IMG/VR virus record: IMGVR_UViG_3300035145_003993
Span: 147,365 to 211,364 of that record
Direction: 5' to 3' (one strand)
Length of the DNA: 64,000 nt
Positions 20,002 to 42,527 of the stretch are shown piece by piece (within the stretch, counting starts at the first letter, position 1; every line of letters starts with the position of its first letter). The notes beneath the pieces were generated by a model that ran no database searches, was not told the DNA's origin, and saw nothing but the letters and a program-made list of their open reading frames with translations. The position numbers and the translations under genes are program-made.

Positions 20002-23000
20002 TCTTTTTAAGCTTAGCTAAACTTGATGACATACCCCAGTTAACATCATTACTAATATCAGCCAACCAAGTTGTAAATTCAATTTCACCTTCCATATCTC
20101 CCCATACTCGAAGCCATCCACTTCGATTATCAATATCGACGCATTTCCATCTCATAAATGATTTACCGTTTTTAGTTGTTTTTCTAATAACTTCTGTAAC
20201 AGTAAACCATCCAATTCCACGCTCACCTTTTGGTATATCAAAAATACTATTGATTTGCTTCTGTTTTAGTTTTTTAACTAAGCTTGGTGGAAACAATAAA
20301 TCGTCATTTGCATCATTACTGAGTTCAAAATAGTTTTTAATTTTAGTACTTCTTGACCAATCACTAACAACTCTGTATTGTGAGATTAACTTTTCGACAA
20401 TTGGAATGATTTCTTCACCATTTTTATTTGCTTTTTTAATAGCAGTTTTTGTCATTCCAAAGCTTCCTTTCTTTAAAATCATATAATTATCCAAGATTAA
20501 ATCATGCATTTGTTTGTGATTGTCTAGTGTTCCATCTTGAAATTCTTGGAGTGACTTAAATGCTTCCATCTTTGTTAGTGATGAAAAAGCTGTTTTATTC
20601 ATTTTTGAATGTTTCCATTCTCCTTCTTTATTGTAAAAAAGATCTTGTAAATTATTATATGGTCTATTTACAAATATTTCTTCAACAGCTTTGTCACCTA
20701 CTCCTTTAAGAGATGTCAACGGAGGAACAAACGATTTTAAATCTTCTGAATATTCCCATTGAGATCCTGAGTGATTTATATCAATTGCTGATATGTCATA
20801 TCCTAGTGCCTTAATTTCTGCAATTACTTTGGACATTCCTTTAGGATTACCATTTTCTGATTGTAAAACAGTTGCTAGCCAGTCTGTTTCGTAGTGTGTA
20901 TGAAGCCACGCAGCGTAATATGAGTCGATTGCATAAGAAACAGCATGACTTTTATTGAAACCGTAAACAGCAAAACCTTCTATTTCTTCCCAAAGTTTTT
21001 TAGATATATGTTCGGGTACATCATTAATTTCTTTTGCACCTTTAATAAACTTTTCTCTTGCAATTGTTTTTTCATCTTTTTTATTTCCCATTGTTGCGAG
21101 ATTATTCTTAACAAGGGTTTTTCTCAGCTTATCAGCTTCACCTGGATCAAAACCTGATAGTTTTTGTGCAAGTAACATAAATTGCTCTTGAAATACAACG
21201 TAAGAAAATGTTGGTCCTAAAACTTCTTCGATAATCGGATGATCGTATTTAATTTGTTCTGCGTTTTGTTTAGATTTAACATATTTTTTATGAACATTAG
21301 CTTTAAGAGGTCCAGGACGATAAATAGCAGTTAAAGCTGCTAATTCTTCAATACTTTCTGGTTTAGCTTCTAATGAAAAGTTTCTAGCTCCTGTATTTGT
21401 AAATTGGAATATTCCTACAAATCTTCCATCATGATATACATGCTTCCAGACATCTTGATCATTTTGTTCGTGAAATCTACAATTTAAATGTTTATCAAAG
21501 AATTTTTTAGCATCACTAAATTGTGGATTATTATTACCCTCCTTTTTAAGGATTCTATAAATACAATTTTCAATATCTTTTAATAAGGATAAACCTAAGA
21601 AATCAAATTTAATAAAACCATTATCTTCTAAGTTTCTAAAATTTAATCCTTCTGACCATGGTGTTTGTAATTCTCCTCTTACACCTACGATAGGCATAGT
21701 TGTTTCTAAATGTTCAGGATCAGCTACTAACACACCCCCTGCATGACGACCAATTGCTCTATTCTGCATAAACAAAGAAGCAATATGAGTTTCAACTTCA
21801 GGATATCTTTCCATAAAATCTTTATATTCTGGAGAATACTTTTTACAATCTTCATGCTTAAGAACAAAAACAGATTTTTCTTGATCGTCACCTTTTGCCA
21901 TTTTCATAACTTGATCGTGAAGAGGACCAGTTACTTTATTTACTTCATCATACGGAATATCATAAAACTTAGATATATCTTTAATAAGAGACTTAAGCTT
22001 TAAAGTATTAAAGTTAGAAACAGGAATAACAGCATCGTTTCCATATAATTCTTTTGCAGCATTAATTAACTCATCACGATCACCAGCATCTGTATCAATA
22101 TCAGGCCATGAAACCCTATGCCTTCCTAAGAATCTTGCCCAAAGAAGATCGTATGGAAGAGGGTCAACTTGTGTAATGCCTAATAAATAATTAACTAAAG
22201 AGCCAGCTCCTGATCCTCTTCCTGGCCCTAATAAAGTTTTCTTTTCAGCCTTCTTAAAAATTTCATACATCGTAATAAAATATGCTTCGTGACCAAGATA
22301 CTTTATATCTGATAATTCTTCTTTAGCACGATCAACATAAACTTGGTTTGTATGAAAACCATGGCTAACGAGTGAATCTTTAACTAAAGAAGATAAGTGT
22401 TGAAAAGGAGTTTTATTTGGAACGTTTATTGTAGGTAGTTTAACTCCTGTATCAATCCAAGTATCTTCAAATTCATTCCAAACGATATCATGAGTTCGAT
22501 TAATAGCATCACGAACTAATTCTTCATTACCTTTATAAAATTCATAAGTAGGATATGAATCAAGAAATTCTTCCCACATTTGAGAAGCATTTTTTGGATA
22601 TAATTCACACTTAAGATCTTCAAATTCTGGAAGAGAAAGATTATCTCTTTTTCCTAACCAACCAAGTTTTTTATATAATTCTCGAGCTTGCCATTTTTCA
22701 TTTGAAGGGTAATGTGAATCTGCTGTACAAATAAGAGGAATACCTGTTAATTTATGGTGTTCTATAAGATAATCATTAACAGTATGCTGTTTTTCTAATT
22801 TATTAAACTGTAATTCAAGTTTAAAATTGTTTTCTCCAACACAAGAAACAAACCTATCTGTTAGATTTAATAATTCTTTCTGAATTTGTTCACGTGATTG
22901 ATTATGAACTTCACCTCTTAAAATACGATTACTATAAATACCACCAAGGCAGTTGTGCACTAAAATATTGTTAGCAAAAAAATTGTGATTACCTTCAACA

Positions 23001-23080
23001 GTAATGTCGTAAACGTCAGAAGTCTCATCTATTTCTTCAATAATTTCAACTTCAATAAATTTTGTTTGAATGTCTTTCAA
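19985..23080 (-). CDS. dnaE: DNA polymerase III alpha, C-terminal part (IntC 43 aa + 988 aa C-extein)
   Basis: TTG start with AGGA RBS; LVHN|CLGG junction; ADSHY, GRGSGAGSL, PDIDTD, GRHAGG, KFDFLGL, FNKSHA motifs; C-terminal OB-like region. Confidence 0.96.
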   Translation of the reverse strand: MKDIQTKFIEVEIIEEIDETSDVYDITVEGNHNFFANNILVHNCLGGIYSNRILRGEVHNQSREQIQKELLNLTDRFVSCVGENNFKLELQFNKLEKQHTVNDYLIEHHKLTGIPLICTADSHYPSNEKWQARELYKKLGWLGKRDNLSLPEFEDLKCELYPKNASQMWEEFLDSYPTYEFYKGNEELVRDAINRTHDIVWNEFEDTWIDTGVKLPTINVPNKTPFQHLSSLVKDSLVSHGFHTNQVYVDRAKEELSDIKYLGHEAYFITMYEIFKKAEKKTLLGPGRGSGAGSLVNYLLGITQVDPLPYDLLWARFLGRHRVSWPDIDTDAGDRDELINAAKELYGNDAVIPVSNFNTLKLKSLIKDISKFYDIPYDEVNKVTGPLHDQVMKMAKGDDQEKSVFVLKHEDCKKYSPEYKDFMERYPEVETHIASLFMQNRAIGRHAGGVLVADPEHLETTMPIVGVRGELQTPWSEGLNFRNLEDNGFIKFDFLGLSLLKDIENCIYRILKKEGNNNPQFSDAKKFFDKHLNCRFHEQNDQDVWKHVYHDGRFVGIFQFTNTGARNFSLEAKPESIEELAALTAIYRPGPLKANVHKKYVKSKQNAEQIKYDHPIIEEVLGPTFSYVVFQEQFMLLAQKLSGFDPGEADKLRKTLVKNNLATMGNKKDEKTIAREKFIKGAKEINDVPEHISKKLWEEIEGFAVYGFNKSHAVSYAIDSYYAAWLHTHYETDWLATVLQSENGNPKGMSKVIAEIKALGYDISAIDINHSGSQWEYSEDLKSFVPPLTSLKGVGDKAVEEIFVNRPYNNLQDLFYNKEGEWKHSKMNKTAFSSLTKMEAFKSLQEFQDGTLDNHKQMHDLILDNYMILKKGSFGMTKTAIKKANKNGEEIIPIVEKLISQYRVVSDWSRSTKIKNYFELSNDANDDLLFPPSLVKKLKQKQINSIFDIPKGERGIGWFTVTEVIRKTTKNGKSFMRWKCVDIDNRSGWLRVWGDMEGEIEFTTWLADISNDVNWGMSSSLAKLKKINAFD
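22952..23080 (-). mobile_element. Split intein C-fragment (DnaE), 43 aa
   Basis: Blocks F/G: VYDITVEGNHNFFANNILVHN, followed by Cys+1 at 22949-22951. Confidence 0.95.
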
Positions 23081-23099
23081 AATTATTCCTTTTTATTAG

Positions 23100-23128
23100 A
23101 ATATAATACAATTAGTTAATATTTACAC
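23100..23128 (-). promoter_or_regulatory. Promoter GTGTAA-N17-TATATT upstream of dnaE-C
   Basis: -35 box lies in the last codons of the endonuclease gene; -10 box is 19 nt before the TTG start. Confidence 0.6.
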
Positions 23129-24062
23129 TTTCATTAATTAAATCAATTGTATTATCAATTTCATTTTCCCATATAATCAAGTAGTTATAGTTTCTTTTTT
23201 TTGCTATCTTCATTTTGTAAGAATCAGCATTCCAAATATCACCTGCTTTTATTTTTCCTCTTGGGAAATCAAGAATGCTATTTTCATTATATAGAGAAGG
23301 GTGTGCGTGCCAAAATAGACCATGGCATTCAATGATTAAATTAAACTTTGGCAGATAAAAATCATATATGTAACATCTTTTGTTGTATAATAATTCATCT
23401 TTTGTCAAATTAATTCGATATTGAATAGAATAGTCAATGTTATTTTCTCTTAATAATCTTTCAATTCTTTTTTCTGTTTTAGGTTGTGATGTTTTTTTAA
23501 GAGCACCAATTGCACCTTTAACAGCTCTTTCTGAAATTATTGCATTTGCATTATCCTTACTTAATCCTTTCTTAAGCCAAAACTCAATGCAAAATGGAGA
23601 ATTTGATCGTTTATAGTTAGATAAACTTTCTTTTGCATCTTCAATATTTTCCGTTTTTTCTATCCAATACTCTAAAGTTTGTTTTTGGTTGTAAGGTTTA
23701 CCTGACTTTTTTCTAGTTTTAACTGTTCCTTTTTGTCCTTTTAAAGAAGTCTTCAAATAGTAACTTTCAATTTCTTTTATTGAAGTGTTTTTTGGAAATT
23801 TAAACTGACTTCTGAATGCTGTTGAAGTTTTTTGATTATCTACATGAAGCTTAAAACCGATTTTGTCTTTTAAAAGAATAGAAAAAGTTTGCTGTGATAT
23901 ATTTAACTCATTAAAGCATTTTCTATTGTCACGATTAATCATTTGATATAACATTGAAAACGAGTAAAGTTTATTAATAAAACCTTGTATTTCTTCTTTT
24001 GAGTAATAAGAAAAAAGTATTTCTTCTCTAATTTTCCATATATTTGTTTTTTTTGTTTTCAT
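23112..24062 (-). CDS. free-standing homing endonuclease, Vsr-like/DUF559 (EDxHD-type), inside the fractured dnaE
   Basis: SQPKTE...YIYDFYL...IIECHGLFWH...ADSYK...LIIWENE; position between IntN and IntC; AGGAGG RBS. Confidence 0.85.
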   Translation of the reverse strand: MKTKKTNIWKIREEILFSYYSKEEIQGFINKLYSFSMLYQMINRDNRKCFNELNISQQTFSILLKDKIGFKLHVDNQKTSTAFRSQFKFPKNTSIKEIESYYLKTSLKGQKGTVKTRKKSGKPYNQKQTLEYWIEKTENIEDAKESLSNYKRSNSPFCIEFWLKKGLSKDNANAIISERAVKGAIGALKKTSQPKTEKRIERLLRENNIDYSIQYRINLTKDELLYNKRCYIYDFYLPKFNLIIECHGLFWHAHPSLYNENSILDFPRGKIKAGDIWNADSYKMKIAKKRNYNYLIIWENEIDNTIDLINESVNIN

Positions 24063-24099
24063 TATATTATCCTCCTAGGCACATATTATATATTCTGCT

Positions 24100-25017
24100 T
24101 CAGAGGTTAATATTAATAATTATATCACCTTTAACAATATCTTTTGTATCAATCCATCCTTTGTCTTTAACAAGAACACGATGATCAGGTGTAAGTTTGA
24201 TTTCGTTACCTTCTTTGTCTTTAATTCTCATAAGCTTAGCACCTCCTCGGGTTTTGTCACCCCAGATTACTTTTTTAAATTCAGCTTTGCTAGTATATTC
24301 ATTATAAGAAAGAACTTGGATTTCTTCACCTTTATTAAATCTTTCTACAACTTCTTTAATAGATAGATTTCCAGATGAAGTTTGTAAAGTTGTGTCAGGA
24401 TGAAGACAAGCTGTAGATATGTGTAATCCTTCACCATGTTCTTGAAGCATTTGAAAATCAATACGTGGGTATCTATAAAAACCATATTTATACGATTTTT
24501 TAACTAAAGTAAATAAATTGTGAAGACCTTTTTGGTTTTTTGCTGTAACTACCAAATGATATCTTCTTTTCCACTCATCTTTAAGGATATCAACATTTTT
24601 TGTTTCATCTTCGTCTTCAACAACTAATCCGCCACTTTCATCATCTGCGTCAATATCAACTTTTTCTTTTGATTTCCTTTCAGCAGCAGCGGCAGATTTT
24701 GCGTCTTTTACTGCTTGTTTGTGAGCAGCATATTCTTCAGACCATTGTTGAAGTGAAGGAACAAAATAAAATTCAACTCCATAAATTTGTCTATAATTCC
24801 TTCCTGATTTTTGCATTCTAATTGTATGAGATCTTGCATGAGCAAGACCATTACCGTTACCATGGTCTGTTAGTGCCCATGCATCCATACCCTGAGATTC
24901 AGACAAAACAAAATCAATATGATCAGATGGGTATCCTAATCCATCGAATGTTGAAAACGTGCTGTGTGCATGAAGACCGACAAATCTATCTGGTGGTGTT
25001 ATTAAATCAATAGACAA
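24100..25017 (-). CDS. dnaE: DNA polymerase III alpha, N-terminal PHP part (203 aa N-extein + IntN 102 aa)
   Basis: LHAHSTFSTFDG, ALTDHGN, YGVEFY, HLVVTAKNQKG, YRYPRID PHP motifs; ISTA|CLHPDT junction; TTG start. Confidence 0.96.
   Translation of the reverse strand: MSIDLITPPDRFVGLHAHSTFSTFDGLGYPSDHIDFVLSESQGMDAWALTDHGNGNGLAHARSHTIRMQKSGRNYRQIYGVEFYFVPSLQQWSEEYAAHKQAVKDAKSAAAAERKSKEKVDIDADDESGGLVVEDEDETKNVDILKDEWKRRYHLVVTAKNQKGLHNLFTLVKKSYKYGFYRYPRIDFQMLQEHGEGLHISTACLHPDTTLQTSSGNLSIKEVVERFNKGEEIQVLSYNEYTSKAEFKKVIWGDKTRGGAKLMRIKDKEGNEIKLTPDHRVLVKDKGWIDTKDIVKGDIIININL
24103..24408 (-). mobile_element. Split intein N-fragment (DnaE), 102 aa
   Basis: Cys1 block A CLHPDT, block B TPDH, then a stop codon. 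Confidence 0.95.
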
Positions 25018-25045
25018 ATTATATACCTTTCTTTTTTTATTTATT

Positions 25046-25294
25046 TTATTTTTCTGATTTTAAAATGTTAATAACTTTTATATCACGAGTTTTAATATCA
25101 TATATTTTATTACTATTTACATCAAGCATTTTATAACTAAAAAATCTTTTATTTCCGTATTTTGTTTTATTTTCAAATAAAAAATTTCTATCTAAAACCA
25201 AAGCTGTTCTCGGACCTGAAAATTGATTTCTAAATATTTTATGTTCAAATGTTACAAGATCAGAAACTTCTAATCCTTTTGAATAAGAAGACAT
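25046..25294 (-). CDS. hypothetical protein, 82 aa
   Basis: ORF with AAGGA RBS. Confidence 0.65.
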   Translation of the reverse strand: MSSYSKGLEVSDLVTFEHKIFRNQFSGPRTALVLDRNFLFENKTKYGNKRFFSYKMLDVNSNKIYDIKTRDIKVINILKSEK

Positions 25295-25341
25295 ATAAAT
25301 TCCTTATTTTTATATTTCATTTAAATGTTTTTTTATAGTTT

Positions 25342-25370
25342 ATTATATTTATTAAATAATTAATTTACAC
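25342..25370 (-). promoter_or_regulatory. Promoter GTGTAA-N17-TATAAT heading the dnaE operon
   Basis: Perfect match, intergenic. Confidence 0.75.
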
Positions 25371-25394
25371 TTAAAAAATACAATAAGGTTTATA

Positions 25395-25493
25395 ATGAAA
25401 ACTAAAGAAATATTAAGAGAATGGAATTTATTTTTAAAAAATATATTGAGACTCTTATTTCTTAAATATTGTATTATACTAATCGTTCAATAA
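25395..25493 (+). pseudogene. 32-codon plus-strand stub with leader-like start
   Basis: AAGG RBS, MKTKEILREWNLFLKN...; resembles the start of ORF 36142-36564 (MKNIYEMFNQWRQFLLDE). Confidence 0.3.
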
Positions 25494-26657
25494 TTTTAAA
25501 GTTCTTTCTTGATTAAATCTCATAACTTTTCCATATTGTAATTTAAAACTTTCAACACAGTTTACAATATTATTTGGACTTTGAGCATCTTCACAGTGTG
25601 TATTAAAAAAATCAATTAAAGTTTCTAATGATTTTAAACCTCCACCAAGATTCCAATAACATTCTCCTGCGAACCACATTCTAGATCTATTAGGCATCCA
25701 CCTATTTTTAATACACTGTTTTATTTCTTTGTTAAGGTAATCATTTTTTGTATTTCCATTCATAATATCTTTTTTTGATAAAACGGGAGTAAAAGTATTA
25801 TTTAATAAATTGTTATAAGACTTTTCATCTAAAAGTTTTTTTGAAATACTATCTACACTATCTAAAAAACTTATTTCTTTAATTCTACATTTTCTAATAC
25901 AAATTTCTCTAAATGCTAATTGTCTAAGAATAGGTATAATTGGATTATCCTTTTCAATAAACCTTGGAGAAAGTGATAAAACTAAATGTGTTATTACCCT
26001 TGGATCAATTAAACCATGATGTAAAAATTTAGAAAGTTTTGTACTTCCTTCTCTTTCATTTCTTGTTTTATGATAAGATAAAACCTTTTCTTTGAATCTT
26101 TTTAAAATGTTACAAACATTTTTATGAGTTTTCAAAGATAAATTATGATTAATTTTATATAATTCGCCTATACTCCCAAAATCATTTATTTTATTATAAT
26201 TACAAAATATTTCTTCTTTCTTTAGTCTATTTTTTGTCCAATAGATCCATCTACTTTTTGCTGTCATTTTTGTACAAGACTCAATATAAGAGTCAGAATC
26301 GACTTCTTCTACATTAATATTATTAAATTTTAATTTTTCTGAAAAAAGAGGTTTATCGTAATATACTTTTTCGATATTTTCATTTTTACAAAAATCTTCA
26401 ATTAATGCAACAGGATTTTTTGATTTAATTATTTTAAGATTTAAATCATAATTTTCTTTTAATCTGCTTGAAAAATAATTTAATGATTCGTAATAAAATA
26501 GATTATTATTATTTTTATAATAATTTTTATTATTATCATTTAAATAATAATTTGAAATATATACAACACAAATATTTTTATAAGAAGATATAGCTTTTTT
26601 AAAAATAAAACTGTTTGTTCTAAAAGAATGATCAATTATAATTAGACATTTAGACAT
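25479..26657 (-). CDS. phrB: DNA photolyase/cryptochrome family protein (compact, divergent)
   Basis: YHKTRN...STKLSKFLHHGLI, RQLAFRE, GNT, WMPNRSRMWFA, EDAQSPNN FAD-binding motifs. Confidence 0.8.
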   Translation of the reverse strand: MSKCLIIIDHSFRTNSFIFKKAISSYKNICVVYISNYYLNDNNKNYYKNNNNLFYYESLNYFSSRLKENYDLNLKIIKSKNPVALIEDFCKNENIEKVYYDKPLFSEKLKFNNINVEEVDSDSYIESCTKMTAKSRWIYWTKNRLKKEEIFCNYNKINDFGSIGELYKINHNLSLKTHKNVCNILKRFKEKVLSYHKTRNEREGSTKLSKFLHHGLIDPRVITHLVLSLSPRFIEKDNPIIPILRQLAFREICIRKCRIKEISFLDSVDSISKKLLDEKSYNNLLNNTFTPVLSKKDIMNGNTKNDYLNKEIKQCIKNRWMPNRSRMWFAGECYWNLGGGLKSLETLIDFFNTHCEDAQSPNNIVNCVESFKLQYGKVMRFNQERTLKLLND

Positions 26658-26691
26658 ATAAACTCTTTTTATTAATTATTATTTATTTTTT

Positions 26692-26754
26692 AATATAATC
26701 ATTATTATTCTTATTTACACATAAAACTATAATTAATTAATATTTAATTTACAC
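26692..26754 (-). promoter_or_regulatory. Tandem promoters GTGTAA-N17-TATAGT (26726-26754) and GTGTAA-N17-TATATT (26692-26720) upstream of photolyase
   Basis: Two copies, both with 17-nt spacers, intergenic. Confidence 0.65.
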
Positions 26755-26772
26755 GCAAAAGTATGGTATAAG

Positions 26773-27003
26773 CTAAGTCTCAGATTTAGTTACCCACAGA
26801 CCGTCTTGATTTTCTAAATCCATTGTTTCTCTAGACGATCCATTTAAGTAAACAATTAGACCTTTAACAAAGTAATGATCTTGAATAATTTCTGTAACTA
26901 AACAGTTATTTTTTATCCTTTCACCATAAAAAAATATATCAATCATGTCACCTTCTTTTAACTGTGATACTTCGTGTATTTCATTTTTATAATTACTGGA
27001 CAT
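26773..27003 (-). CDS. hypothetical protein, 76 aa
   Basis: ORF on main strand. Confidence 0.6.
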   Translation of the reverse strand: MSSNYKNEIHEVSQLKEGDMIDIFFYGERIKNNCLVTEIIQDHYFVKGLIVYLNGSSRETMDLENQDGLWVTKSET

Positions 27004-28194: not shown

Positions 28195-28223
28195 ATAATA
28201 TAAGGATTTGTTTTAAATTACAA
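28195..28223 (-). promoter_or_regulatory. Promoter variant TTGTAA-N17-TATTAT upstream of the vWA gene
   Basis: One mismatch in each box, 17-nt spacer. Confidence 0.45.
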
Positions 28224-28988
28224 ATTAGACTTTTTTAGATAAATAAGATGTCTTGTACCATGATAATTTTTATTTTCTATATTATCAATAGTCCAGTAAT
28301 GATTTGTTTTTTTAATGTTTCTATAAAAATCTTTCATTAATAAAACGTCTATATTAACGCCTTGATTTTTTAATATATCAACAGCTAATAAGTTTGAATT
28401 AAATTTTCTATCTCTACGAATAGCCTTTAATTCAACATATTTATCTTCATCAGGATGGTAAAAATCTGGCGTATATTGCTTGTCTCTTCCTGCATAATTT
28501 ACAGTAAAAGTTTTATGTTCATAAATATAAGGCTTATTTGTTGCTTCGCACCATCTTGCATAATCTGCCTCTAATCCTGATTTGAAAAAATAATTACTTG
28601 GTAAATCTCTTCTAAATCCTAATCTTCCATTTGAAGGTATTTCGTGTAAACCACTACTTTGAGCTTTATATTGGCAATCTTTACTACAATATTTAGTAGC
28701 TTGTCCTATTGGCTTTTGATATGATTTTCCACAAAAATTACAATTTAAATCGATTCTTTCATGACGATTTTCTTTTAAATAACATTCTCGTCTACAATAT
28801 TTTTTATCTCTTTTAGCTTTAAATTTATTGTTACAAGAAAGACAATTTTTATAAACATATTTTGAAGAATTTTTGTCTTTACAGACCTTTGAACAAAACT
28901 TTGATGAAGAAGCTCTTGATGCTGGTTTTTTATAAATAGATTTACACTCTTGACACGTTAACTCTACTTGATTACTTTTTCTAGGCAT
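28218..28988 (-). CDS. PD-(D/E)xK endonuclease (T7 endonuclease I-like) with N-terminal CxxC/CSxxC zinc-finger repeats; probable free-standing homing endonuclease
   Basis: KSGLEAD...YIYE...YTPDFY...YVELK; three CxxC...CSxxC-type units. Confidence 0.75.
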   Translation of the reverse strand: MPRKSNQVELTCQECKSIYKKPASRASSSKFCSKVCKDKNSSKYVYKNCLSCNNKFKAKRDKKYCRRECYLKENRHERIDLNCNFCGKSYQKPIGQATKYCSKDCQYKAQSSGLHEIPSNGRLGFRRDLPSNYFFKSGLEADYARWCEATNKPYIYEHKTFTVNYAGRDKQYTPDFYHPDEDKYVELKAIRRDRKFNSNLLAVDILKNQGVNIDVLLMKDFYRNIKKTNHYWTIDNIENKNYHGTRHLIYLKKSNL

Positions 28989-31061: not shown

Positions 31062-32027
31062 TTAATTGTTGAATTGTTTTTTAACTTGATTTATGGCTCT
31101 TACATCATCATTCCACATCCTTGTAAAGATTTTTTCTTCACCAGATTTATTGCCGTTTAATTCTTCGCGGCGACAAGGGTAAATTGAATCTTCTTCATTG
31201 AATTCAAACAAATCGTTTTTAGGCTCTGGATGATATAAATTAGTTCCTTTTGAAGTAAAAGTACCATCTGCTTGTTTAACTCTAAATGTTCTAACATAAT
31301 GCATGTCAGGTTTTTCAAAATCTAAGCAAGTTGCAACTTCAGGAATTCTTTCAACAACTAGTCTTGCTATTTTAGTAGCAATAATATTATCAACCTCAGG
31401 CTGAATTTGTACATCTTGTCTTTGTTTAATAAGACCAATTAAATCTTTTAAATTAAACCTTGCAATATAAAATGTTTCGATAGATTTTGGCATAATAACT
31501 CTAGCGTCCATTAAAGAAATTAGTTTTGAATCTACCATATCAGAATATAATTGTTTTGCAGCAGCAGCAACTTCAATAAATCTATGGTAAAAATCAGAAT
31601 TTTCAATAGACTCTGGAACTAAAATATTATCGTGTCGTAGGTCTCTATCACCTGTGCATTGAGCAGCAAATGATCCTGCTCTGTGTCTAATTAAGTGTGT
31701 TACGGTTTGAGTATCAATACCACTTATCCTAAAAGTAAATCCTAAACATTCCATAGGCGTTGGTAAGGCTCTAAAATTTAGTACGTCTTGAAGGTTTTGT
31801 GAGGCCTCTTCAGGTGAAGCATTATTAAAGTCAGTTTCAAAAGGTCGATCAGCCCATGTTGCCTTGGTCATATTCCAAGCTATTTCTTGTGCTTGCTTTT
31901 GTGTTGGAGCATCAATCACTTCAATTTTAAGTGATTCTAAATTGTTAATATAGTTTGTAACAGGAACTTCGTTAAACTTTAAAAGCATAGGAAGTTGAAT
32001 CTTATCTAAATCATTATTAATTGGCAA
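31062..32027 (-). CDS. divergent ThyX (flavin-dependent thymidylate synthase)-like paralog
   Basis: PME..FTFRISG...HLIRHRAGSFAAQCTGDR, DARVIMP, N..L....KQR; motif altered versus RHRxxSxxxxSxRY; TTG start with AAGGAG RBS. Confidence 0.8.
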   Translation of the reverse strand: MPINNDLDKIQLPMLLKFNEVPVTNYINNLESLKIEVIDAPTQKQAQEIAWNMTKATWADRPFETDFNNASPEEASQNLQDVLNFRALPTPMECLGFTFRISGIDTQTVTHLIRHRAGSFAAQCTGDRDLRHDNILVPESIENSDFYHRFIEVAAAAKQLYSDMVDSKLISLMDARVIMPKSIETFYIARFNLKDLIGLIKQRQDVQIQPEVDNIIATKIARLVVERIPEVATCLDFEKPDMHYVRTFRVKQADGTFTSKGTNLYHPEPKNDLFEFNEEDSIYPCRREELNGNKSGEEKIFTRMWNDDVRAINQVKKQFNN

Positions 32028-33781: not shown

Positions 33782-34504
33782 TTACTCGTGATTATTAATA
33801 TAACTGTTAACAGTTTCTGGCCAAAGATCTTTAATAATATCTAACATTCTAAATGCTAATTGTTGAATTTCCCATTGAGCTCCTTCATGTGTTCTTAAAT
33901 TTATAAACTTTAATATGTTATTTAAATTCGCAGAAGCGTAATATTCTGTATAAAGATTTTGTGGTAAAATTCCACGCGCTTGTTCTCTGCATATACCATT
34001 GTTTACTAAATCATCAAATAATTTTAAAGAATTTTTGTGATAATTTTTAATAACATTCGATGCTTTAGTTTTAATTTTAACGCTACTTACTGCAGAGTCA
34101 ATTTCTAATATAGGATCAATTAATTCATCTTGATTTGAAGATTGTCTATTTGATTTGTGTTGAGTTCTAAATTGATTAGGTTCATAAAATTCTATATTAG
34201 AATCTGTATATCTTCTAGAGATTTCGTTGTATGACCAAGTTCTGTGTCTATGATGTTGTGATCGAACAAATAATGGAACTTTAATTCTAAAAGTTGCAAA
34301 ATTATGTTCTAAAGTAGATGTATGTTTATGTTTAATTAAATAATTAATTAACTTTTTATCTTTATTATCAAGACTTTCTTTGTGAACTCCGAATGATACC
34401 CTTGCTGAATTTACTATTGTAATATCTTCGCCAACATATTGAACTAATTCTATTTTTCCTATGCCATCTTCATACAGATTTTTTTCAATAGTATCTATTT
34501 TCAA
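33782..34504 (-). CDS. thyX: flavin-dependent thymidylate synthase ThyX (canonical)
   Basis: NSARVSF, HTSTLEH, RHRTWSYNEISRRY, EQARGILP, FINLR...AQWEI. Confidence 0.96.
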   Translation of the reverse strand: MKIDTIEKNLYEDGIGKIELVQYVGEDITIVNSARVSFGVHKESLDNKDKKLINYLIKHKHTSTLEHNFATFRIKVPLFVRSQHHRHRTWSYNEISRRYTDSNIEFYEPNQFRTQHKSNRQSSNQDELIDPILEIDSAVSSVKIKTKASNVIKNYHKNSLKLFDDLVNNGICREQARGILPQNLYTEYYASANLNNILKFINLRTHEGAQWEIQQLAFRMLDIIKDLWPETVNSYINNHE

Positions 34505-35324: not shown

Positions 35325-35353
35325 ATTATATTAATATTAGTTTTATTTTACAC
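35325..35353 (-). promoter_or_regulatory. Promoter GTGTAA-N17-TATAAT heading the MTase-thyX operon
   Basis: Perfect match, intergenic. Confidence 0.75.
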
Positions 35354-35359
35354 TAAAAA

Positions 35360-36142
35360 TTAATCAATATTGTAATATAATTTTTCTGCCCAAGGTATAA
35401 CATCCCATTTTTTTGCTGAAATGTTGTGGTGTCCTACAATACTATATTTAGAAGCTTCTTTCACAGACATTACATCTAAACTTTCACAAACTGGTTTGTC
35501 TGTGAGATTAGTTGCTTCTCTTAATGATTGTAAAAATTGTTTGCAAACATCTGCAAAATCGTCACCAATCATTACTAATTTTCTTCCTTTTACTCTATTA
35601 TCTGGTATTTTACAAACTTGAAGTGATGCATCTGGGTACCAATTTTTAGTTTTTTCCCAATATTTTTCATCTGGATGCATGCAAATATCAATACCAATAG
35701 AGTATTTATTAAATTTTCCTGCATGATAAGCAGCTAAACCTGTATCTAAGCATTGTAAAATTTCATATTCACCTGTTTTATGATTTCTTCCAATTAAAAA
35801 ATGTGAAGAAACGTGTCTTCCTCTTGCAAGATTAAAAACATTATAACAGTGTCTAGAATTTAATCCTCCCCAATGTACACAAATAGATGTAGGATCAGAT
35901 TTTCTTTTATACCAATTTTTTGTACCATCATCAAGTTCGTATAAAGGCGCAGACCAATCAATTTCTAAAGGAGAATCAATTGGAACGACTTTTCCCATAT
36001 GCATTATGATAGGCATCCCATAATATTGTCTAACTGCTCTATGAGTTGCTGGTCCATATATACCATCTGCTTTAACACCTACTTCTTGTTGAAGTGATAT
36101 TACATATTCTTTGTTTTTATTTAAAGTACTAAACTGTTCCAT
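35360..36142 (-). CDS. endolysin: peptidoglycan-binding domain plus N-acetylmuramoyl-L-alanine amidase (Amidase_2)
   Basis: LQ..VGVKADGIYGPAT; ICVHW, SSHFLI, AYHAG..N..SIGID, VGHH...K.D. Confidence 0.85.
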   Translation of the reverse strand: MEQFSTLNKNKEYVISLQQEVGVKADGIYGPATHRAVRQYYGMPIIMHMGKVVPIDSPLEIDWSAPLYELDDGTKNWYKRKSDPTSICVHWGGLNSRHCYNVFNLARGRHVSSHFLIGRNHKTGEYEILQCLDTGLAAYHAGKFNKYSIGIDICMHPDEKYWEKTKNWYPDASLQVCKIPDNRVKGRKLVMIGDDFADVCKQFLQSLREATNLTDKPVCESLDVMSVKEASKYSIVGHHNISAKKWDVIPWAEKLYYNID

Positions 36143-36564
36143 TATCTATTATTACCTTCAATTCTATCTTTAATTCTATCTTTAATTATTTCTTCCTTGT
36201 TAGGATAAGATTTTATAACTATTTTAAGACATTTTTCTGTTAATTTTATTAAAGATTTTACATCATCATCAGTTATAGGTTCATTTTTATTTTTTTTAAA
36301 ACTTTTTTTAAGTTTAAAAAGACTTTCATCATCTGTAGACATTTCTAAATATTCTAAATAAGAATTAATATTTAACAATAATGAATTAATCATTCTGTCT
36401 GCAGATTCTGGTGTTTTTAAACTTAGTTTAACAAATCCTATAGCTTCATCATAGTCTAAATCCATCTGCTTTTCACTAATTTCTGTAATGATTTCTTTAT
36501 TTGGCAAATTTTCATCTAGTAGAAATTGTCTCCATTGATTAAACATTTCGTATATATTTTTCAT
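36142..36564 (-). CDS. hypothetical protein, 140 aa
   Basis: ORF with AAGGA RBS; WRQFLLDE leader. Confidence 0.7.
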   Translation of the reverse strand: MKNIYEMFNQWRQFLLDENLPNKEIITEISEKQMDLDYDEAIGFVKLSLKTPESADRMINSLLLNINSYLEYLEMSTDDESLFKLKKSFKKNKNEPITDDDVKSLIKLTEKCLKIVIKSYPNKEEIIKDRIKDRIEGNNR

Positions 36565-36575
36565 AAATAATCCTT

Positions 36576-37562
36576 TTAATAATCTAAATTTTCTTCGTAA
36601 TCATCATATTCATCAGAATCACCAAATTCAGTAAATGCAGTTGCTGTATTTAAAACATATTTTCCTAAGACATTTTGTAAGTCTTCTGTTCCAACTTCAT
36701 TTTTTGCTCTATTTATCATATCCTCATTGATATTACTACCGTCGAGAGCGCCACAAATTTTCAAAGATCCAAGAGCTGTCATTAGATTTATTATTTCGTC
36801 ACTTGCATTTTGAGTTCTTAGAAAATTAATTTTTTCTTGAACGCTATCTTTAATTCTTTTCTTTTCAGAAGGTTTTACATTATAGACACCTCCTTGAGAA
36901 AATAAATCGTTTTCATCTTCAGACTGCTCTAAATTTAGTGGCTGTCTAAAGAAACTAATAACATCATCATTTTTTCCTGAAATGACATTTTGACTCCACT
37001 CTTCTAGGCTATCAAATTTATTAATACCTAAATCACCTTCAATATCATCTTTATTTAAGCTCAATTCTTCATAGACATCATCTGATAAGTTTAAAGAATT
37101 TGACAGTAATTCTTGAAATAAAAGAACTAAAGGATTTTCTTGATTTTCTTGATTTATAGGATTAGAATCGATTCCAAAAACAGATTTAATAGCAGATAAT
37201 TCTTTGTCTGTAAGTTGTTTAAAATCATTATTATTAATCCTTCTAGTAAAAGAATCTTTAACGCTATTAGGAATACTATTAGGATTGCCAATCTCTTTTG
37301 CTGTGTTTACTATAGCTGTTTCTTCGTTAGGTTTTAATTTAGTATTTTTCCCTATTTGAGTTCCTAAAATACCTGTTGTTCCTATTGCTAATATTAATAT
37401 TTTTTCTAATGGTGTTGTATTAGAAACGAATTTTTTTATATTTTTTAAAAAATTTTCGTCTATTCTATTATTTTTATTTAAAATACTTTCAAATATATAG
37501 TCTATTTCATCGTAGTAAAATATTTGATTTTTAATATAACTTTCTAATAATTGATTTGTCAT
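36576..37562 (-). CDS. hypothetical protein, 328 aa, with a short hydrophobic segment
   Basis: ORF; LLESYIK leader; ILILAIGTTGILG segment. Confidence 0.7.
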   Translation of the reverse strand: MTNQLLESYIKNQIFYYDEIDYIFESILNKNNRIDENFLKNIKKFVSNTTPLEKILILAIGTTGILGTQIGKNTKLKPNEETAIVNTAKEIGNPNSIPNSVKDSFTRRINNNDFKQLTDKELSAIKSVFGIDSNPINQENQENPLVLLFQELLSNSLNLSDDVYEELSLNKDDIEGDLGINKFDSLEEWSQNVISGKNDDVISFFRQPLNLEQSEDENDLFSQGGVYNVKPSEKKRIKDSVQEKINFLRTQNASDEIINLMTALGSLKICGALDGSNINEDMINRAKNEVGTEDLQNVLGKYVLNTATAFTEFGDSDEYDDYEENLDY

Positions 37563-37595
37563 ATAATATTCTTTCTATTAAATTTATAATAAATA

Positions 37596-38201
37596 TTATT
37601 CTAAATCAAAACTTACAGAAACTTTTCCTTTTAATCGTGGTATTCTTAATTGCTGGACTATATTGTGTTCTTTTGCCTCTTCAGCTTCTAAAAACCAATC
37701 TGCGTGACCTTTGTCATGAATTAAGTTTAAGAAATAATCATCCGGCTTTCCACAATTTCGTGCCATCATAGTATATAATTTTTTATTTAATCGTTCAGAC
37801 TCGCGTGCATCAGCTTTAAGTTCTTCAACTTTACCAAAAGCCATTGAAGAAACATCATGAATCATTAGTACAGAATCTTTGTCCATAAATCGTAAACCTT
37901 CGTCACCAAAAGAAGCTAATAAAGCTCCACATGACATTGCTTTTCCTTTAACAATAGTTGCTACAGGAATTGTTGATGATTTAATTGTAGCTATCATTGA
38001 TAATAGTGAATAAGCTTGACCTCCAAATGAATCAATAACAATAGGTATAATTTTTTGCCCAGTATTTTGAGCAGCACTAACGAGAGTTGAAAATTCGCTA
38101 GCAGACTCTTCAGTAAATTCATTTACAGTTATAACTACAGGATCGTTTCTTAGCTCAAGATCCTTGATTAGTGGAGATATCTCAGCAACAAAATTAATCA
38201 T
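37596..38201 (-). CDS. clpP: ClpP-like serine protease
   Basis: IDSFGG, GKAMSCG (catalytic Ser), LMIHD (His), WF..AEEA.E. Confidence 0.9.
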   Translation of the reverse strand: MINFVAEISPLIKDLELRNDPVVITVNEFTEESASEFSTLVSAAQNTGQKIIPIVIDSFGGQAYSLLSMIATIKSSTIPVATIVKGKAMSCGALLASFGDEGLRFMDKDSVLMIHDVSSMAFGKVEELKADARESERLNKKLYTMMARNCGKPDDYFLNLIHDKGHADWFLEAEEAKEHNIVQQLRIPRLKGKVSVSFDLE

Positions 38202-38445
38202 TTAACATTCCTCTCAAAGAATCAATTGTCATTAATCCAACTTTTCTTGACACTTCTTTGTCATCAACTACCTTAATAAATGTAGGAACATTCATAACAT
38301 GATATTTACATGACTTAACAGTATCTTCAGATATATCAATAATCTCAATTGATAATTCGTTTTTAATATTTTCTGTTAGTCTATTTTTCATTTGCTTACA
38401 CGGCCCACACCAAGGAGCACTAAAAAATAAAATTTTTGTATTCAT
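38194..38445 (-). CDS. trxA: thioredoxin
   Basis: FSAPWCGPCK, cis-Pro VPT. Confidence 0.93.
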   Translation of the reverse strand: MNTKILFFSAPWCGPCKQMKNRLTENIKNELSIEIIDISEDTVKSCKYHVMNVPTFIKVVDDKEVSRKVGLMTIDSLRGMLND

Positions 38446-38502
38446 AAACCACCTTTTTAATTTTTATATATTATATTAATAAAAAGTTTTTTTTATTAAT
38501 TA

Positions 38503-39468
38503 TTAAGCTATATTTTCCCAACCCCAACTGTCACCACTCATACCATCAGCATTATAGTCTGTAACAGTTCCTTCGAAGAAGTTTTTAAAACTGTCACCAT
38601 TAATAATCCAGTCTAACCAATCTAGCGGATTATGTTTGACTTTAAAATTAGGCTTTAAACCTAACTGAATTAAGCGACGGTCTGCAAGATATCTGATGTA
38701 TTGCTTAACCTCTTCTTTGTCTAATCCTTCAATATGACCCATTTCATAAGCTAAATCAATAACTTTGTCTTCTAATTTTACAGCTTGACGATACATTTTA
38801 TAAATTGATTTTTTAAATTCGTCATTTACAATTCGTGGATGTTCTTTTACAAACTCTCTAAATAGATGAGTCATGCCTTGAACGTGCATCGTCTCGTCGC
38901 GGATAGACCATTCAACGATTTCACACATTCCTTTCATTTTTCCAAACCTTTGGTAATTTAATAACATTACAAATGCTGAAAATAGACTCATTCCTTCATT
39001 ACACGCAGACTGCGCAAGAGCTAGTCCTAGTCCTTTTTTAGTACTTACATCGTTTTGTTGCATGAACTCAATTTTATCACTCATTTCTTTATATTCAAGA
39101 AACGCGCCATATTCTTCTTCAGACAATCCTAGTGTATCGTTCAAGAGAGCATAGCTTCTTTGATGTGTGCCTTCACGATTTGCAAAACTTAATAGCATAC
39201 TCCTAATTTCATTATTTTTAAACTTAGGAATAAACAGATCACAATAATTACCACCTACTTGCACATCACTTTGTGTAAATAGTCTAAGAATTTGTGTAAT
39301 ATGGTTTTTTTCTTCTAAAGATATTTTTCCACCTTTCCACTGATTGACATCTTCAGCTAACTTTGCTTCCCAACTTCCCCAGTGAATCTTTTCATGACTT
39401 TCTGCGATTTCCATTGCCCAAGCATACTTGAAGGGCTTATATGTTGTATTGTATTTTAGTAATGACAT
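38503..39468 (-). CDS. nrdB: ribonucleotide reductase class Ia beta subunit
   Basis: LFTQSD, REGTHQRSY (radical Tyr), EGMSL, RDETMH di-iron ligands, NFFE. Confidence 0.95.
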   Translation of the reverse strand: MSLLKYNTTYKPFKYAWAMEIAESHEKIHWGSWEAKLAEDVNQWKGGKISLEEKNHITQILRLFTQSDVQVGGNYCDLFIPKFKNNEIRSMLLSFANREGTHQRSYALLNDTLGLSEEEYGAFLEYKEMSDKIEFMQQNDVSTKKGLGLALAQSACNEGMSLFSAFVMLLNYQRFGKMKGMCEIVEWSIRDETMHVQGMTHLFREFVKEHPRIVNDEFKKSIYKMYRQAVKLEDKVIDLAYEMGHIEGLDKEEVKQYIRYLADRRLIQLGLKPNFKVKHNPLDWLDWIINGDSFKNFFEGTVTDYNADGMSGDSWGWENIA

Positions 39469-39501
39469 ACGTTTAACCTTTGTAAAAACCTTGTATAATA
39501 A

Positions 39502-40563
39502 TTATCCTTGACAGCTTAAACATTCATCAGGATCAGCGAAATCTTGTAACTTATCTTGCTTAACCTTCTGACTAACCTTTTCAGCTGAAGCTCCTGCGTT
39601 TGTCCTTAGATAATATAATCCTTTTAACTTCTTTTTCCAAGCTCTAATATGTACTGCATTAACATAAGATTTATCAGTACCAGCGGGAAAGAATAAATTA
39701 ACACTTTGACCTTGGCAAATAAATTCTTGTCTATCACCTGCGTGATCTATAATCCATCTTTGATCTAATTCAAATGCTGTTTTAAATACTTCTTTATGCC
39801 AATCTGACATGTATTCAAGGTGTTGAACAGATCCTTCTGCTAAGATAATAGATTTCCATTGTTCATTCATCCAAGATTCAATATCAATTTTTTCTACATT
39901 GTCAGCATACTCTCTTAAAACTTTTTCTAAGTGATGATTTTTCACTAAATAAGAACCTACTCTTGTTCTATGTGTATATGCATTACTTTTCCAAGGTTCA
40001 ATAGATGGTGAAGTCCCTGCAATAATAGAAGAATTAGCATTTGGAGCAATTGCTAATAGATGAGAATTCCTAACTCCGTAACCAGATCCATCAGGACATT
40101 CACCTTTTTTAATCGCCAACTCTTTTGTACGCTGTTTTGCTTTTTCTTTAATTAATGAGAATATATTAATATTTGTTGCTTTTGCAATCCCTGATTCAAA
40201 CGGAATATTTTTTGATTGAAGATAGGAGTGAAATCCCATTGCACCTAAACCAAGTGATCTTTCTCTCATAGCGGAAAATTTTGCTTTGTGCAAATAGTCA
40301 GGAGCATTTTCAATAAAAAATTGTAGGACGTTATCTAAATACTCTATTAAATCTTCAACAATATTTGTGTCTTTCCATTCATCAAACTTTTCAACATTTA
40401 GTGAGCTTAAACAACATACTGCACTTCTTTCAGGAGATGTTGCCAAATGGATCTCATTACAATTGTGAACGAGCATGTTATTTGCAAAAAAATTTTTATT
40501 GTCTTTAACAGTTATGTCAAAAACAGGTTCTTTTGTTTCTCTTTTAATTATTTTTAATCCCAT
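39502..40563 (-). CDS. nrdA: ribonucleotide reductase alpha, C-terminal part (IntC 34 aa + 319 aa)
   Basis: LVHN|CNEI junction, CCLSSLN, RSLGLGAMG, AIAPNANSS, QGQSVN, LYYLR, C-terminal CLSC. Confidence 0.96.
   Translation of the reverse strand: MGLKIIKRETKEPVFDITVKDNKNFFANNMLVHNCNEIHLATSPERSAVCCLSSLNVEKFDEWKDTNIVEDLIEYLDNVLQFFIENAPDYLHKAKFSAMRERSLGLGAMGFHSYLQSKNIPFESGIAKATNINIFSLIKEKAKQRTKELAIKKGECPDGSGYGVRNSHLLAIAPNANSSIIAGTSPSIEPWKSNAYTHRTRVGSYLVKNHHLEKVLREYADNVEKIDIESWMNEQWKSIILAEGSVQHLEYMSDWHKEVFKTAFELDQRWIIDHAGDRQEFICQGQSVNLFFPAGTDKSYVNAVHIRAWKKKLKGLYYLRTNAGASAEKVSQKVKQDKLQDFADPDECLSCQG
40462..40563 (-). mobile_element. Split intein C-fragment (NrdA), 34 aa
   Basis: VFDITVKDNKNFFANNMLVHN, followed by Cys+1 at 40459-40461. 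Confidence 0.95.
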
Positions 40564-41302
40564 ATTTTCTACCTTTTATCCATTCTTCACTGTTAAGTGC
40601 ATCGATTTCTTTTTTGCTCATTTGTTTTGAAACTTTAAGTTTTTCGTTAGTGTACCAATTTTTTCCTGATAATGACTTAGAAAGTTTATTATTATGGCTA
40701 TTCGTTCTTTTATATTTAAAATCACTGTCATTTAAGTTATACAAATCTTTCATTGCGTTTACAAAACCTTTTAAGCCCGATCCATATTTTTTAAATCTAA
40801 ATTTTGAATAAGACTTTGGAAAACCATAAACTTCTGAACTATATATTTGCCACTTTCTTTTAGGTAGCTGTCCTTCTTTTTGAAAATAAGTAAAAGCTGA
40901 TTTTAATATTTCTTCATCAGTAAAACCTGTGTATGTTGGATTTTTTTCTCCTGATGTTGCAATAGAATTTTTTAGTCGCCATTCACTATATTTTTCATCA
41001 GGAACTATCCATCCACCATCACCACCCGTAGTCATATTATAACCCTTTTTAAAAGTATCATAATATTCAATGTAATACTTTTCTTTTTCTAAAGCTTCTT
41101 TTTTAGTATAACATTCAAAAATTATTTTAGATACTATATTTTTAGGACCGTATTTTCTAATTGCTTTATAAAAATGTGTATCATGACCTGATTGTGCATT
41201 TGTAATATGTTTGTGTAGTCTTTTTGACAAAGTTAGTCCAGTGTATCCAATGTATGACTTGTTTGTTTGTTTAAAAGTGTGCATGTATATTATATATTTC
41301 AA
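40544..41302 (-). CDS. free-standing GIY-YIG homing endonuclease inside the fractured nrdA
   Basis: YIIY...SYIGYT, RLHKH, FYKAIRKYG, E..YI...GYNMT.GG; TTG start with AAGGAG RBS; 20-nt overlap with the nrdA-C start. Confidence 0.9.
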   Translation of the reverse strand: MKYIIYMHTFKQTNKSYIGYTGLTLSKRLHKHITNAQSGHDTHFYKAIRKYGPKNIVSKIIFECYTKKEALEKEKYYIEYYDTFKKGYNMTTGGDGGWIVPDEKYSEWRLKNSIATSGEKNPTYTGFTDEEILKSAFTYFQKEGQLPKRKWQIYSSEVYGFPKSYSKFRFKKYGSGLKGFVNAMKDLYNLNDSDFKYKRTNSHNNKLSKSLSGKNWYTNEKLKVSKQMSKKEIDALNSEEWIKGRKYGIKNN

Positions 41303-41360
41303 ACTATCTCCTTATGTTAGTAAATGAATTTCAACATTAAATATACATCTAACAATCAAA

Positions 41361-42527
41361 TTAAGAAAAAACTAATTCATCGTCTTCTTTAAGATCTTTA
41401 GCTTTTACATATCCTCTATTTACAGTATATACTTTGTGATCAGGAGTACAAACAATTTTTTTACCAGTTTCTTCATCTATTATTTCAAGTACTTCTGCAC
41501 TTTTACTAATTAATCCTGCATCAGTAATTTCTTTGTATTCAATTTCTTTTGTATCAATATTATAAGACAACACAAAAATTTCTTTTCCTTCATGAAAAAG
41601 ATCAACAACTTCTTCTAATGATACCTGTGCATTTGGCACATTGTCAATTAACACATCAATCTTCGTATCTCCTGTTAAGCAAAGATTTGATCCATGTATC
41701 TTAAGTCCTAAATCTTTTTGATATTGAGGTAAGTGTTTATTTGCTTCTGAAATGAAGTTAATATATGGCTCGCCTGTTCTAAATCTGACTTTTAGTATTC
41801 TTTGCCATAATTCTCTTGCGTCAACTGTGTCTCTTATTGTTTTATCATTAGGATCAATTAAATTCCATTTTTCGCCTTTAGATACTGCTTCCATAAATTC
41901 GTCTGTTACATTTACTGCATTGTTTAAATTAAAACATTTACGATTTACGTCTCCTCCTGTTGGAAGTCGAATACTTAAAAATTCAATAATATCAGGATGA
42001 GAAACATCCATATAAGCTGCATAGCTTCCTTTCCTAGTTTTTCCTTGTCTATAAGCAGTCATATCACTATCTGCAGATTTTAAAAAAGGAATTGGTCCTG
42101 GTGATATTGAAGAATTAGATCTAACTTTAGACCAATGACCTCCTACACCACCACCTTTTACAGACATCCAACGTAATTCATTTGAATGATCTATAAGACC
42201 TTCTAAAGAGTCATCAACATAACTTAAAAAACAAGAAATAGGAAGTCCTAATTCTGTACCACCGGGAACGGGAGCATTAGATAAGATTGGAGAACTAAAC
42301 ATAAACCAACCTTTTGCCGCGTAATTATAAATTCTTTGTGCAAGTGACAAATCATATTTTTTATTTTGAAAATCGTAAGAGAATGCTACAGCTGCCCTTG
42401 CAAAACTTTCTTGAGGAGACTCCTCGTGATCTTGCATATAATAGTCTCTAAGTAATTTTCGTGAAAAATTTGTTAATTTATCGTCATAATCTAAGTTAAT
42501 ACTAATACCATAGCATTCTTTTTTCAT
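41361..42527 (-). CDS. nrdA: ribonucleotide reductase alpha, N-terminal part (282 aa + IntN 106 aa)
   Basis: FSSPILSN, PISCFL, GGGVG, QGKTRKGS, TGEPYI, HGSNL|CLTGDT junction. Confidence 0.96.
   Translation of the reverse strand: MKKECYGISINLDYDDKLTNFSRKLLRDYYMQDHEESPQESFARAAVAFSYDFQNKKYDLSLAQRIYNYAAKGWFMFSSPILSNAPVPGGTELGLPISCFLSYVDDSLEGLIDHSNELRWMSVKGGGVGGHWSKVRSNSSISPGPIPFLKSADSDMTAYRQGKTRKGSYAAYMDVSHPDIIEFLSIRLPTGGDVNRKCFNLNNAVNVTDEFMEAVSKGEKWNLIDPNDKTIRDTVDARELWQRILKVRFRTGEPYINFISEANKHLPQYQKDLGLKIHGSNLCLTGDTKIDVLIDNVPNAQVSLEEVVDLFHEGKEIFVLSYNIDTKEIEYKEITDAGLISKSAEVLEIIDEETGKKIVCTPDHKVYTVNRGYVKAKDLKEDDELVFS
41364..41681 (-). mobile_element. Split intein N-fragment (NrdA), 106 aa
   Basis: Cys1 CLTGDT, block B CTPDH, RGYV.A.DL...D.L, then a stop codon. 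Confidence 0.95.

Follow-up and report, generated by a model that had tools for sequence, protein, structure and literature searches.

Dassa et al. have described “fractured genes”, in which a host gene is interrupted by a split intein and a free-standing homing endonuclease gene of the GIY-YIG or Vsr-like type lies between the two halves (PMC2677866). Such loci were found in phage-like sequences from ocean metagenomes, in the genes for gp41, IMPDH, NrdA (NrdA-1 to NrdA-7), NrdJ, DnaE (DnaE-1 to DnaE-3) and others, and the DnaE sites were stated to differ from the cyanobacterial DnaE site (PMC2677866). The same study noted both charge polarities within the family: NrdA-2 has a negative N-terminal intein half (IntN) and a positive C-terminal half (IntC), gp41-1 and gp41-8 were assigned one polarity, and NrdJ-1 and IMPDH-1 the other (PMC2677866). 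Here we analyse a 64-kb stretch of DNA (the window), the final 64 kb of the 211,364-bp viral contig IMGVR_UViG_3300035145_003993 (window position x is contig position x + 147364), which carries two such fractured genes, encoding the DNA polymerase DnaE and the ribonucleotide reductase (RNR) NrdA, and whose two split inteins are of opposite charge polarity.

The initial annotation of this DNA had suggested that the pair reflects an evolved electrostatic code against cross-splicing. We consider it probable (about 0.75) that the two are independent fractured-gene insertions of a known kind, each with a polarity inherited in its own lineage, and not a code that evolved from their meeting. Nor is novelty supported: both polarities were reported in the family in 2009 (PMC2677866), and charge-based engineering of orthogonality has been published together with its limits (10.1101/546465).

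Two fractured genes of a known kind

Pfam Intein_splicing matches all four intein pieces (E 2e-10, 2e-9, 6e-9 and 3e-6; the weakest falls under the Pfam cut-off, yet is correctly placed), and the exteins match the PHP, DNA_pol3_alpha and Ribonuc_red domains. Both inteins have Cys1, TPDH in block B, a penultimate His, a terminal Asn and Cys+1, as expected of class 1 (canonical) inteins, and the Cys1, Asn and Cys+1 residues named in the initial annotation are all in place. Ribosome-binding sites stand ahead of both C-terminal pieces and both endonuclease genes (Table 1), and both co-resident split inteins are apparently functional.

The DnaE intein is inserted after extein residue 203, within the PHP domain. 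The first residue of its IntN is the Cys that follows ...ISTA, and the last lies 3 residues ahead of the stop; the C-terminal piece starts with TTG, 7 nt downstream of an AAGGA ribosome-binding site. The endonuclease encoded between the halves matches homing and HNH endonuclease families in PHROGs (E 2e-17 to 1e-7). Its likeness to Pfam Vsr is sub-threshold (E 0.008), a profile search of the PDB gave 3R3P and Vsr as the best, weak matches (E 0.13-0.4), and a single-sequence search of solved structures gave none. In the NrdA locus, the open reading frame (ORF) for the C-terminal piece shares a 20-nt overlap with the GIY-YIG endonuclease gene, and the C-extein starts at the Cys of the conserved ...SNL/C... 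RNR motif (the slash marks the break); the break directly precedes the active-site Cys.

Table 1 Features of the two fractured loci, in window coordinates
Feature	Position	Strand	Length (aa)	Characteristics	Matches
DnaE-N ORF	24100..25017	-	305	203-aa PHP-domain N-extein and IntN	Pfam PHP (E 9e-20), Intein_splicing (E 2e-10)
DnaE site-a IntN	24103..24408	-	102	Cys1; block B TPDH; net +2; zipper segment +3	
Free-standing homing endonuclease, DnaE locus	23112..24062	-	316	Vsr-like/I-Bth0305I-like; AGGAGG ribosome-binding site	PHROGs
DnaE-C ORF	19985..23080	-	1031	IntC and polymerase core C-extein	Pfam Intein_splicing, DNA_pol3_alpha, finger, HHH_6
DnaE site-a IntC	22952..23080	-	43	Ends VHN, then Cys+1 (CLGG); net -8; segment before block F -6	
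NrdA-N ORF	41361..42527	-	388	N-extein and IntN	Pfam Ribonuc_red_lgN, Ribonuc_red_lgC, Intein_splicing
NrdA IntN	41364..41681	-	106	Follows ...GSNL; Cys1; TPDH; net -12; zipper segment -3	
Free-standing GIY-YIG homing endonuclease, NrdA locus	40544..41302	-	252	TTG start after AAGGAG	Pfam GIY-YIG (E 1e-8); PHROG homing endonuclease (E 1e-25)
NrdA-C ORF	39502..40563	-	353	IntC and C-extein	
NrdA IntC	40462..40563	-	34	Ends VHN, then Cys+1 (CNEI); net +2; segment before block F +2	

The arrangement is that of the fractured genes of Dassa et al. (PMC2677866): each host gene lies in two adjacent ORFs on the same strand, the first ending in IntN and the second starting with IntC, and a free-standing endonuclease gene separates them, clearly of the GIY-YIG type in NrdA and with only a sub-threshold Vsr likeness in DnaE. 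The likeness extends to a phage-like origin, to mobility, as close relatives have an uninterrupted allele at the same codon, and to the NrdA insertion point, which is directly ahead of the active-site Cys as in NrdA-1 to NrdA-7. The difference is that NrdA and DnaE fractured loci occur here together on one 211-kb contig.

Among solved structures, NrdJ-1 (PDB code 8UBS) is the closest by sequence to both IntNs (NrdA, E 6e-18; DnaE, E 7e-10). It shares the acidic-N/basic-C polarity of the NrdA intein but differs in host gene and insertion point, and the DnaE intein is of the opposite polarity. The DnaE intein resembles gp41-1 (PDB code 6QAZ) in having a basic IntN strand and an acidic IntC strand as a charge zipper (10.1101/546465), and the two IntCs align, including the acidic run; gp41-1 has a helicase host, however, and its IntN is not detected as close to the DnaE IntN (phmmer, E<=1). 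The cyanobacterial Npu and Ssp DnaE inteins share with this DnaE intein the host family and Cys1/Asn/Cys+1, and with the NrdA intein the acidic-N/basic-C polarity. They differ from the DnaE intein of the window, which sits after residue 203 in the PHP domain, has the opposite polarity and has adjacent halves with an endonuclease gene between them; they are absent from the IntN matches at E<=1, and the IntC similarity is marginal (E ~1). We therefore rejected the idea of an allele of the cyanobacterial DnaE split intein: the insertion point is different and there is no close sequence similarity. Finally, charge-swapped Npu DnaE and orthogonal Npu DnaB, as outlined in 10.1101/546465 and the earlier work cited there, likewise reverse the zipper to cut cross-reaction, but these are designed, whereas the reversal here is natural and lineage-wide. 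A search of the available literature gave nothing on natural co-resident split inteins and cross-reaction.

Charge polarity of the two inteins and their lineages

Recomputed net charges (K+R minus D+E) of +2 and -8 for the DnaE IntN and IntC, and of -12 and +2 for those of NrdA, match the hand counts made in the initial annotation, whose span of 22952-41681 runs exactly from the DnaE IntC end to the NrdA IntN start. Its description of the NrdA pair as acidic-N/basic-C like Npu DnaE, and of the DnaE pair as inverted, holds both overall and on the zipper segments. As a background, we took every same-length sliding window over the proteins encoded in the 64 kb, which have a neutral mean charge. 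The -8 over 43 residues lies in the lowest 2.7% of these and the -12 over 106 residues in the lowest 4.1%, while +2 is ordinary over either 102 or 34 residues (38% and 30% of sliding windows, respectively, are at least as basic). Each pair thus consists of one strongly acidic half and one near-neutral, slightly basic half, and only the acidic-acidic wrong pairing is clearly repulsive. The proposal that both wrong pairings are like-charged is accordingly borne out, and strongly, for -12/-8, but +2/+2 is indistinguishable from the proteome background.

The zipper strands were assigned by alignment and from the literature, using structures of other inteins: following the gp41-1 structure paper, they are the strand before block B in IntN, for which we scored the 25 residues before that block, and the start of IntC. 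The IntN segment has a charge of +3 in DnaE and of -3 in NrdA; for the IntC segment, which precedes block F, the values are -6 and +2, respectively. Homologous zipper positions are reversed in both halves, AKLMRIKDKE (DnaE) versus AEVLEIIDEE (NrdA) in IntN and EVEIIEE versus GLKIIKR in IntC. A genuine natural reciprocal charge swap separates the two related inteins, and it probably helps partner choice. The DnaE intein fits the basic-N/acidic-C charge-zipper class of gp41-1 and gp41-8, and the NrdA intein the acidic-N/basic-C class of Npu DnaE, NrdJ-1, IMPDH-1 and NrdA-2.

The two inteins are 36% identical in IntN and 64% in IntC. The near-identity of their F/G blocks, which had been taken as a risk of cross-splicing, is real (15 of 19 residues), but the risk does not follow from it: the motif is also present in Npu DnaB, Spl DnaX, gp41-1 and a PolB intein, and the similarity is that of a family-wide catalytic motif conserved in unrelated inteins.

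To place the DnaE polarity among its relatives, we searched 1.84 billion representatives with the DnaE IntN using HMMER and examined the best 150 matches. These include 48 clearly split IntNs, 10 of them net basic. Inteins at the DnaE site of the window (site a) were recognized by an N-extein ending in the motif xSTA, GLSA, ATSA or CTSA, and all 8 of their cluster representatives have a basic IntN, versus 2 of the 40 others (Fisher p = 1e-7). A maximum-likelihood tree groups the site-a IntNs, every one of them basic, in a single clade (support 82/71), and the basic label changes 3 times, versus 10.9 when shuffled (0/500 shuffles as low). Site-a inteins of five genomes (the window and the related loci L003, L121, L125 and L126) have an IntN of +2 to +11 and an IntC of -7 to -10. 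At the NrdA site, the IntN is -7 to -12 and the IntC +1 to +2 in close relatives, in L067 (60% extein identity) and in a mini-intein, L075. The last is a contiguous 150-aa intein at the same NrdA site (L075:1616-2065) with no endonuclease; its acidic-N/basic-C pattern marks it as a relative of the split NrdA intein that is itself unsplit, and implies that the polarity at this site predates splitting. The idea that the code evolved for this co-residence is therefore not supported: polarity is a trait of the lineage, basic in IntN for all 8 site-a representatives and acidic in IntN throughout the NrdA clade.

The closest non-DnaE relative of the site-a intein among the matches listed is P0003, from an RNR-like host at locus L124, with 53% IntN identity. 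Its zipper charges are the opposite of those of the window's site-a intein, with ANLIEIETEEG versus AKLMRIKDKEG in IntN and a Lys-rich versus a Glu-rich start of IntC, so that the site-a clade has the appearance of an RNR-type intein whose charges were reciprocally inverted.

Mobility, multiply split DnaE genes and source of the DNA

We surveyed 40 DnaE loci from related viral contigs and the best 80 NrdA loci. About 33 of the 40 DnaE loci are contiguous across ISTA/CLGG, and the site-a intein with its endonuclease is present in only three, L001 (the window's own contig), L002 and L003. Most of the NrdA relatives lack the NrdA intein and match in the extein only; the intein is split in nine close relatives and in L067-L069, a clade with 60% extein identity, and a large contiguous intein occupies the site in L114, L117 and L118. 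Both insertions are thus sporadic mobile elements, and their co-residence here implies separate invasions. The six contigs recovered by both surveys carry neither intein, and the contigs with an NrdA intein are not long enough to include DnaE. At the distant site-a locus of L121, a 97-aa ORF without a family match takes the place of the endonuclease gene (L121:7151-7444) and may be a remnant or a replacement of it. An acidic intein C-terminal block that ends in SHN followed by Thr lies in a 185-aa frame upstream of NrdA in two further loci (L055:2686 and L057:4976).

Co-residence does not require the polarity difference that had been proposed for it, as two basic-N/acidic-C split inteins share one DnaE gene in both L003 and L126. 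In L003, DnaE is encoded in four ORFs with three split inteins, a (IntN/IntC +4/-9), b (+4/-12) and c (-9/-1); L126, a 103-kb contig of a distant relative (IntN of a 46% identical), has a (+4/-7) and b (+2/-4). In both, the middle polypeptide bears the IntC of a, which is acidic, together with the IntN of b, which is basic, and so keeps in cis a wrong pair that electrostatics would favour. Other DnaE genes combine b and c (L028), d and b (L031), b and e (L013 and L029), a and e (L121) or a and c (L125).

The multiply fractured DnaE of these related phages is the more noteworthy by-product of the survey. The gene is broken at up to three places, and L003 needs three trans-splicing reactions. 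There are at least five DnaE split-intein sites: a (ISTA/C), b (LGRHR/C), c (MQNRS/C), d (GPGRG/C) and e (GFNK/S); the +1 residue is Thr or Ser at sites b, d and e, and site e also has Ser1. Multiply split genes span L003:10001-16887, L126:10001-16388, L125:646-4275, L121:6237-9866, L028:10115-16480, L031:8024-10978, L029:10346-16543 and L013:1065-5234. No endonuclease gene lies between the halves at junction b in L003 and L027 or at junction a in L125. A literature search gave no description of natural multi-split genes of this kind. In L025, L026, L028-L031 and L040, the first ~21 DnaE codons lie ~1.1 kb upstream of the remainder, with residues 9-21 repeated (e.g. L028:8857-10001), and a 311-aa endonuclease-like ORF stands between the displaced start and the remainder (L028:8934-9869). 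Either an intron or a further endonuclease insertion that duplicated its target could account for this displacement.

The source of the window is a large uncultured marine or wetland phage. The window has a G+C content of ~27%, with almost all genes on the minus strand, and includes a replication and nucleotide-metabolism module (DnaB-like helicase, dUTPase, NrdA/NrdB, ThyX, DnaE and others) as well as virion-associated lysin-like genes. Its DNA was detected in wetland, estuary and marine metagenomes. A search for near-identical phage records gave none, and the best DnaE protein matches, ~30% identical, are the DnaE proteins of Bacillus and Streptomyces phages. The unit of IntC, endonuclease and IntN was recovered in contigs from independent marine runs; these sample contigs showed no intein-less joint and no RNA evidence. 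The split-gene ORFs are intact and kept across several samples at 85-95% identity. A motif scan of the 64-kb window found no third split intein, and as the window covers 64 kb of the 211-kb contig, two is a minimum count for the genome.

Two ThyX/Thy1-like ORFs with RHR-type motifs (31062-32027 and 33782-34504, minus strand) lie in the same module, 1.7 kb apart, and a 324-aa ORF upstream of DnaE in L121 is annotated Thy1. At 28218-28988 (minus strand), a free-standing 256-aa Cys-rich endonuclease-like ORF (PHROG HNH endonuclease, E 3e-12) has unrelated genes on either side. On visual comparison it is similar to the ORF between the two site-b DnaE halves of L013, L029 and L126, and it could be a homing endonuclease that lacks an associated intein in this genome.

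Partner choice and the meaning of the charge reversal

Each insertion is a mobile unit, a class 1 split intein around a free-standing homing endonuclease gene at a conserved DnaE or NrdA site. By analogy with other members of the family, the two halves of each protein would be translated separately and would meet through the IntN/IntC interface, where an extended, charged beta-strand zipper allows electrostatic capture before collapse into the HINT fold, and would then be joined by standard Cys1/Cys+1/Asn splicing chemistry. The polarities come from the lineages, basic-N/acidic-C in the DnaE site-a clade as in gp41-1, and acidic-N/basic-C in the NrdA clade as in NrdJ-1, NrdA-2 and Npu DnaE. 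Discrimination between partners most likely comes from several features together, namely the low IntN identity of 36%, IntC recognition segments that are unlike in both sequence and length (43 and 34 aa) and the reversed zipper. The polarity difference is thus a contributing consequence of which lineages met. Polarity alone is neither necessary nor sufficient for partner specificity. In published work, gp41-1, gp41-8, NrdJ-1 and IMPDH-1 are given as mutually orthogonal (PMC7090010; PMC11766414, citing Carvajal-Vallejos 2012) although two pairs of them share polarity, so same-polarity members of the family can be orthogonal. Beyer et al. found that Npu DnaE with swapped zipper charges still spliced with its wild-type partner, that charge engineering made Npu DnaB halves orthogonal, and that mis-charged Npu DnaB halves were strongly impaired in trans-splicing (10.1101/546465).

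Several points weigh against independent insertions with inherited polarity. Splicing activity is deduced wholly from conserved residues and intact ORFs, and L003 and L126, which supply the same-polarity pairs, are metagenomic contigs whose viability is assumed. The reversal relative to both the NrdA intein and P0003 at L124 is the pattern expected from selection for orthogonality, and 6 of the 8 adjacent pairs in multi-split DnaE genes are opposite in polarity. One may thus ask whether the charge inversion of DnaE relative to RNR-type inteins arose, or was kept, by selection against cross-splicing, as an evolved electrostatic code: the site-a clade would then derive from an acidic-N RNR-type split intein, with both zipper strands inverted under selection against cross-splicing with the RNR split inteins, which are common in these phage genomes. 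In keeping with this, the reversal is reciprocal at homologous zipper positions in both halves, and the nearest non-DnaE relative among the matches listed is opposite on both. Site-a inteins usually occur alongside other split inteins (in the window, L003, L121, L125 and L126), and the Npu DnaB work shows that charge can be engineered to give orthogonality. We nevertheless regard both such selection and this particular derivation as unlikely. Polarity is fixed across the whole site-a and the whole NrdA clades, whatever the partner, and two divergent genomes each have the same-polarity inteins a and b in a single gene, where non-cognate halves of opposite charge share a polypeptide. The +2/+2 wrong pairing is no more repulsive than the background, natural inteins of the same polarity are orthogonal, and a charge swap alone was insufficient in Npu DnaE. 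Nor is the excess of opposite pairs significant, with ~0.6 expected from the lineage pool (binomial p ~0.3) and pairs that are phylogenetically non-independent.

The opposite extreme, in which the polarity difference is functionally irrelevant and reflects neutral drift with compensatory co-evolution within each pair, discrimination being left to shape and hydrophobic register, would accommodate the orthogonality of same-polarity family members, the co-residence of a and b, the 36% IntN identity and the 9-residue length difference between the IntC recognition segments. We hold it to be improbable: work on capture and collapse and on charge zippers, as presented in 10.1101/546465, has electrostatics driving natural split-intein association, mis-charged Npu DnaB halves are impaired, and the two acidic halves are proteome outliers, which suggests that their charge is maintained. 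It is less probable still, to the point of being very hard to credit, that one or both inteins no longer splice, through defective genes or through assembly into a non-covalent complex. The latter has a precedent in the split NrdA of phage Aeh1, as mentioned in PMC2677866 and PMC3045599, but nothing direct favours either possibility, while the catalytic residues are complete in both inteins, the ORFs are intact and conserved in the samples described above, and the NrdA break lies just before the active-site Cys, where a covalent backbone would be expected to matter.

If the site-a inversion was selected after all, polarity would be one evolved axis of a natural orthogonality system with multiple determinants, and such a system would let phages run up to three or even more trans-splicing reactions at once, even within one protein. 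For engineering, the window adds two inteins to the candidate fast split inteins of the gp41-1/NrdJ-1 family; the two are likely to be orthogonal, given their divergence and the orthogonality of family members that have diverged to a comparable degree, in a field where many orthogonal pairs exist already and the charge-swap principle has been published. As for the phages themselves, at least six split-intein lineages occur in two genes of the clade, at DnaE sites a-e and in NrdA, and in some of its genomes a single protein undergoes two or three trans-splicing reactions. The clade is thus a well-suited natural system in which to ask what determines the partner specificity of split inteins.

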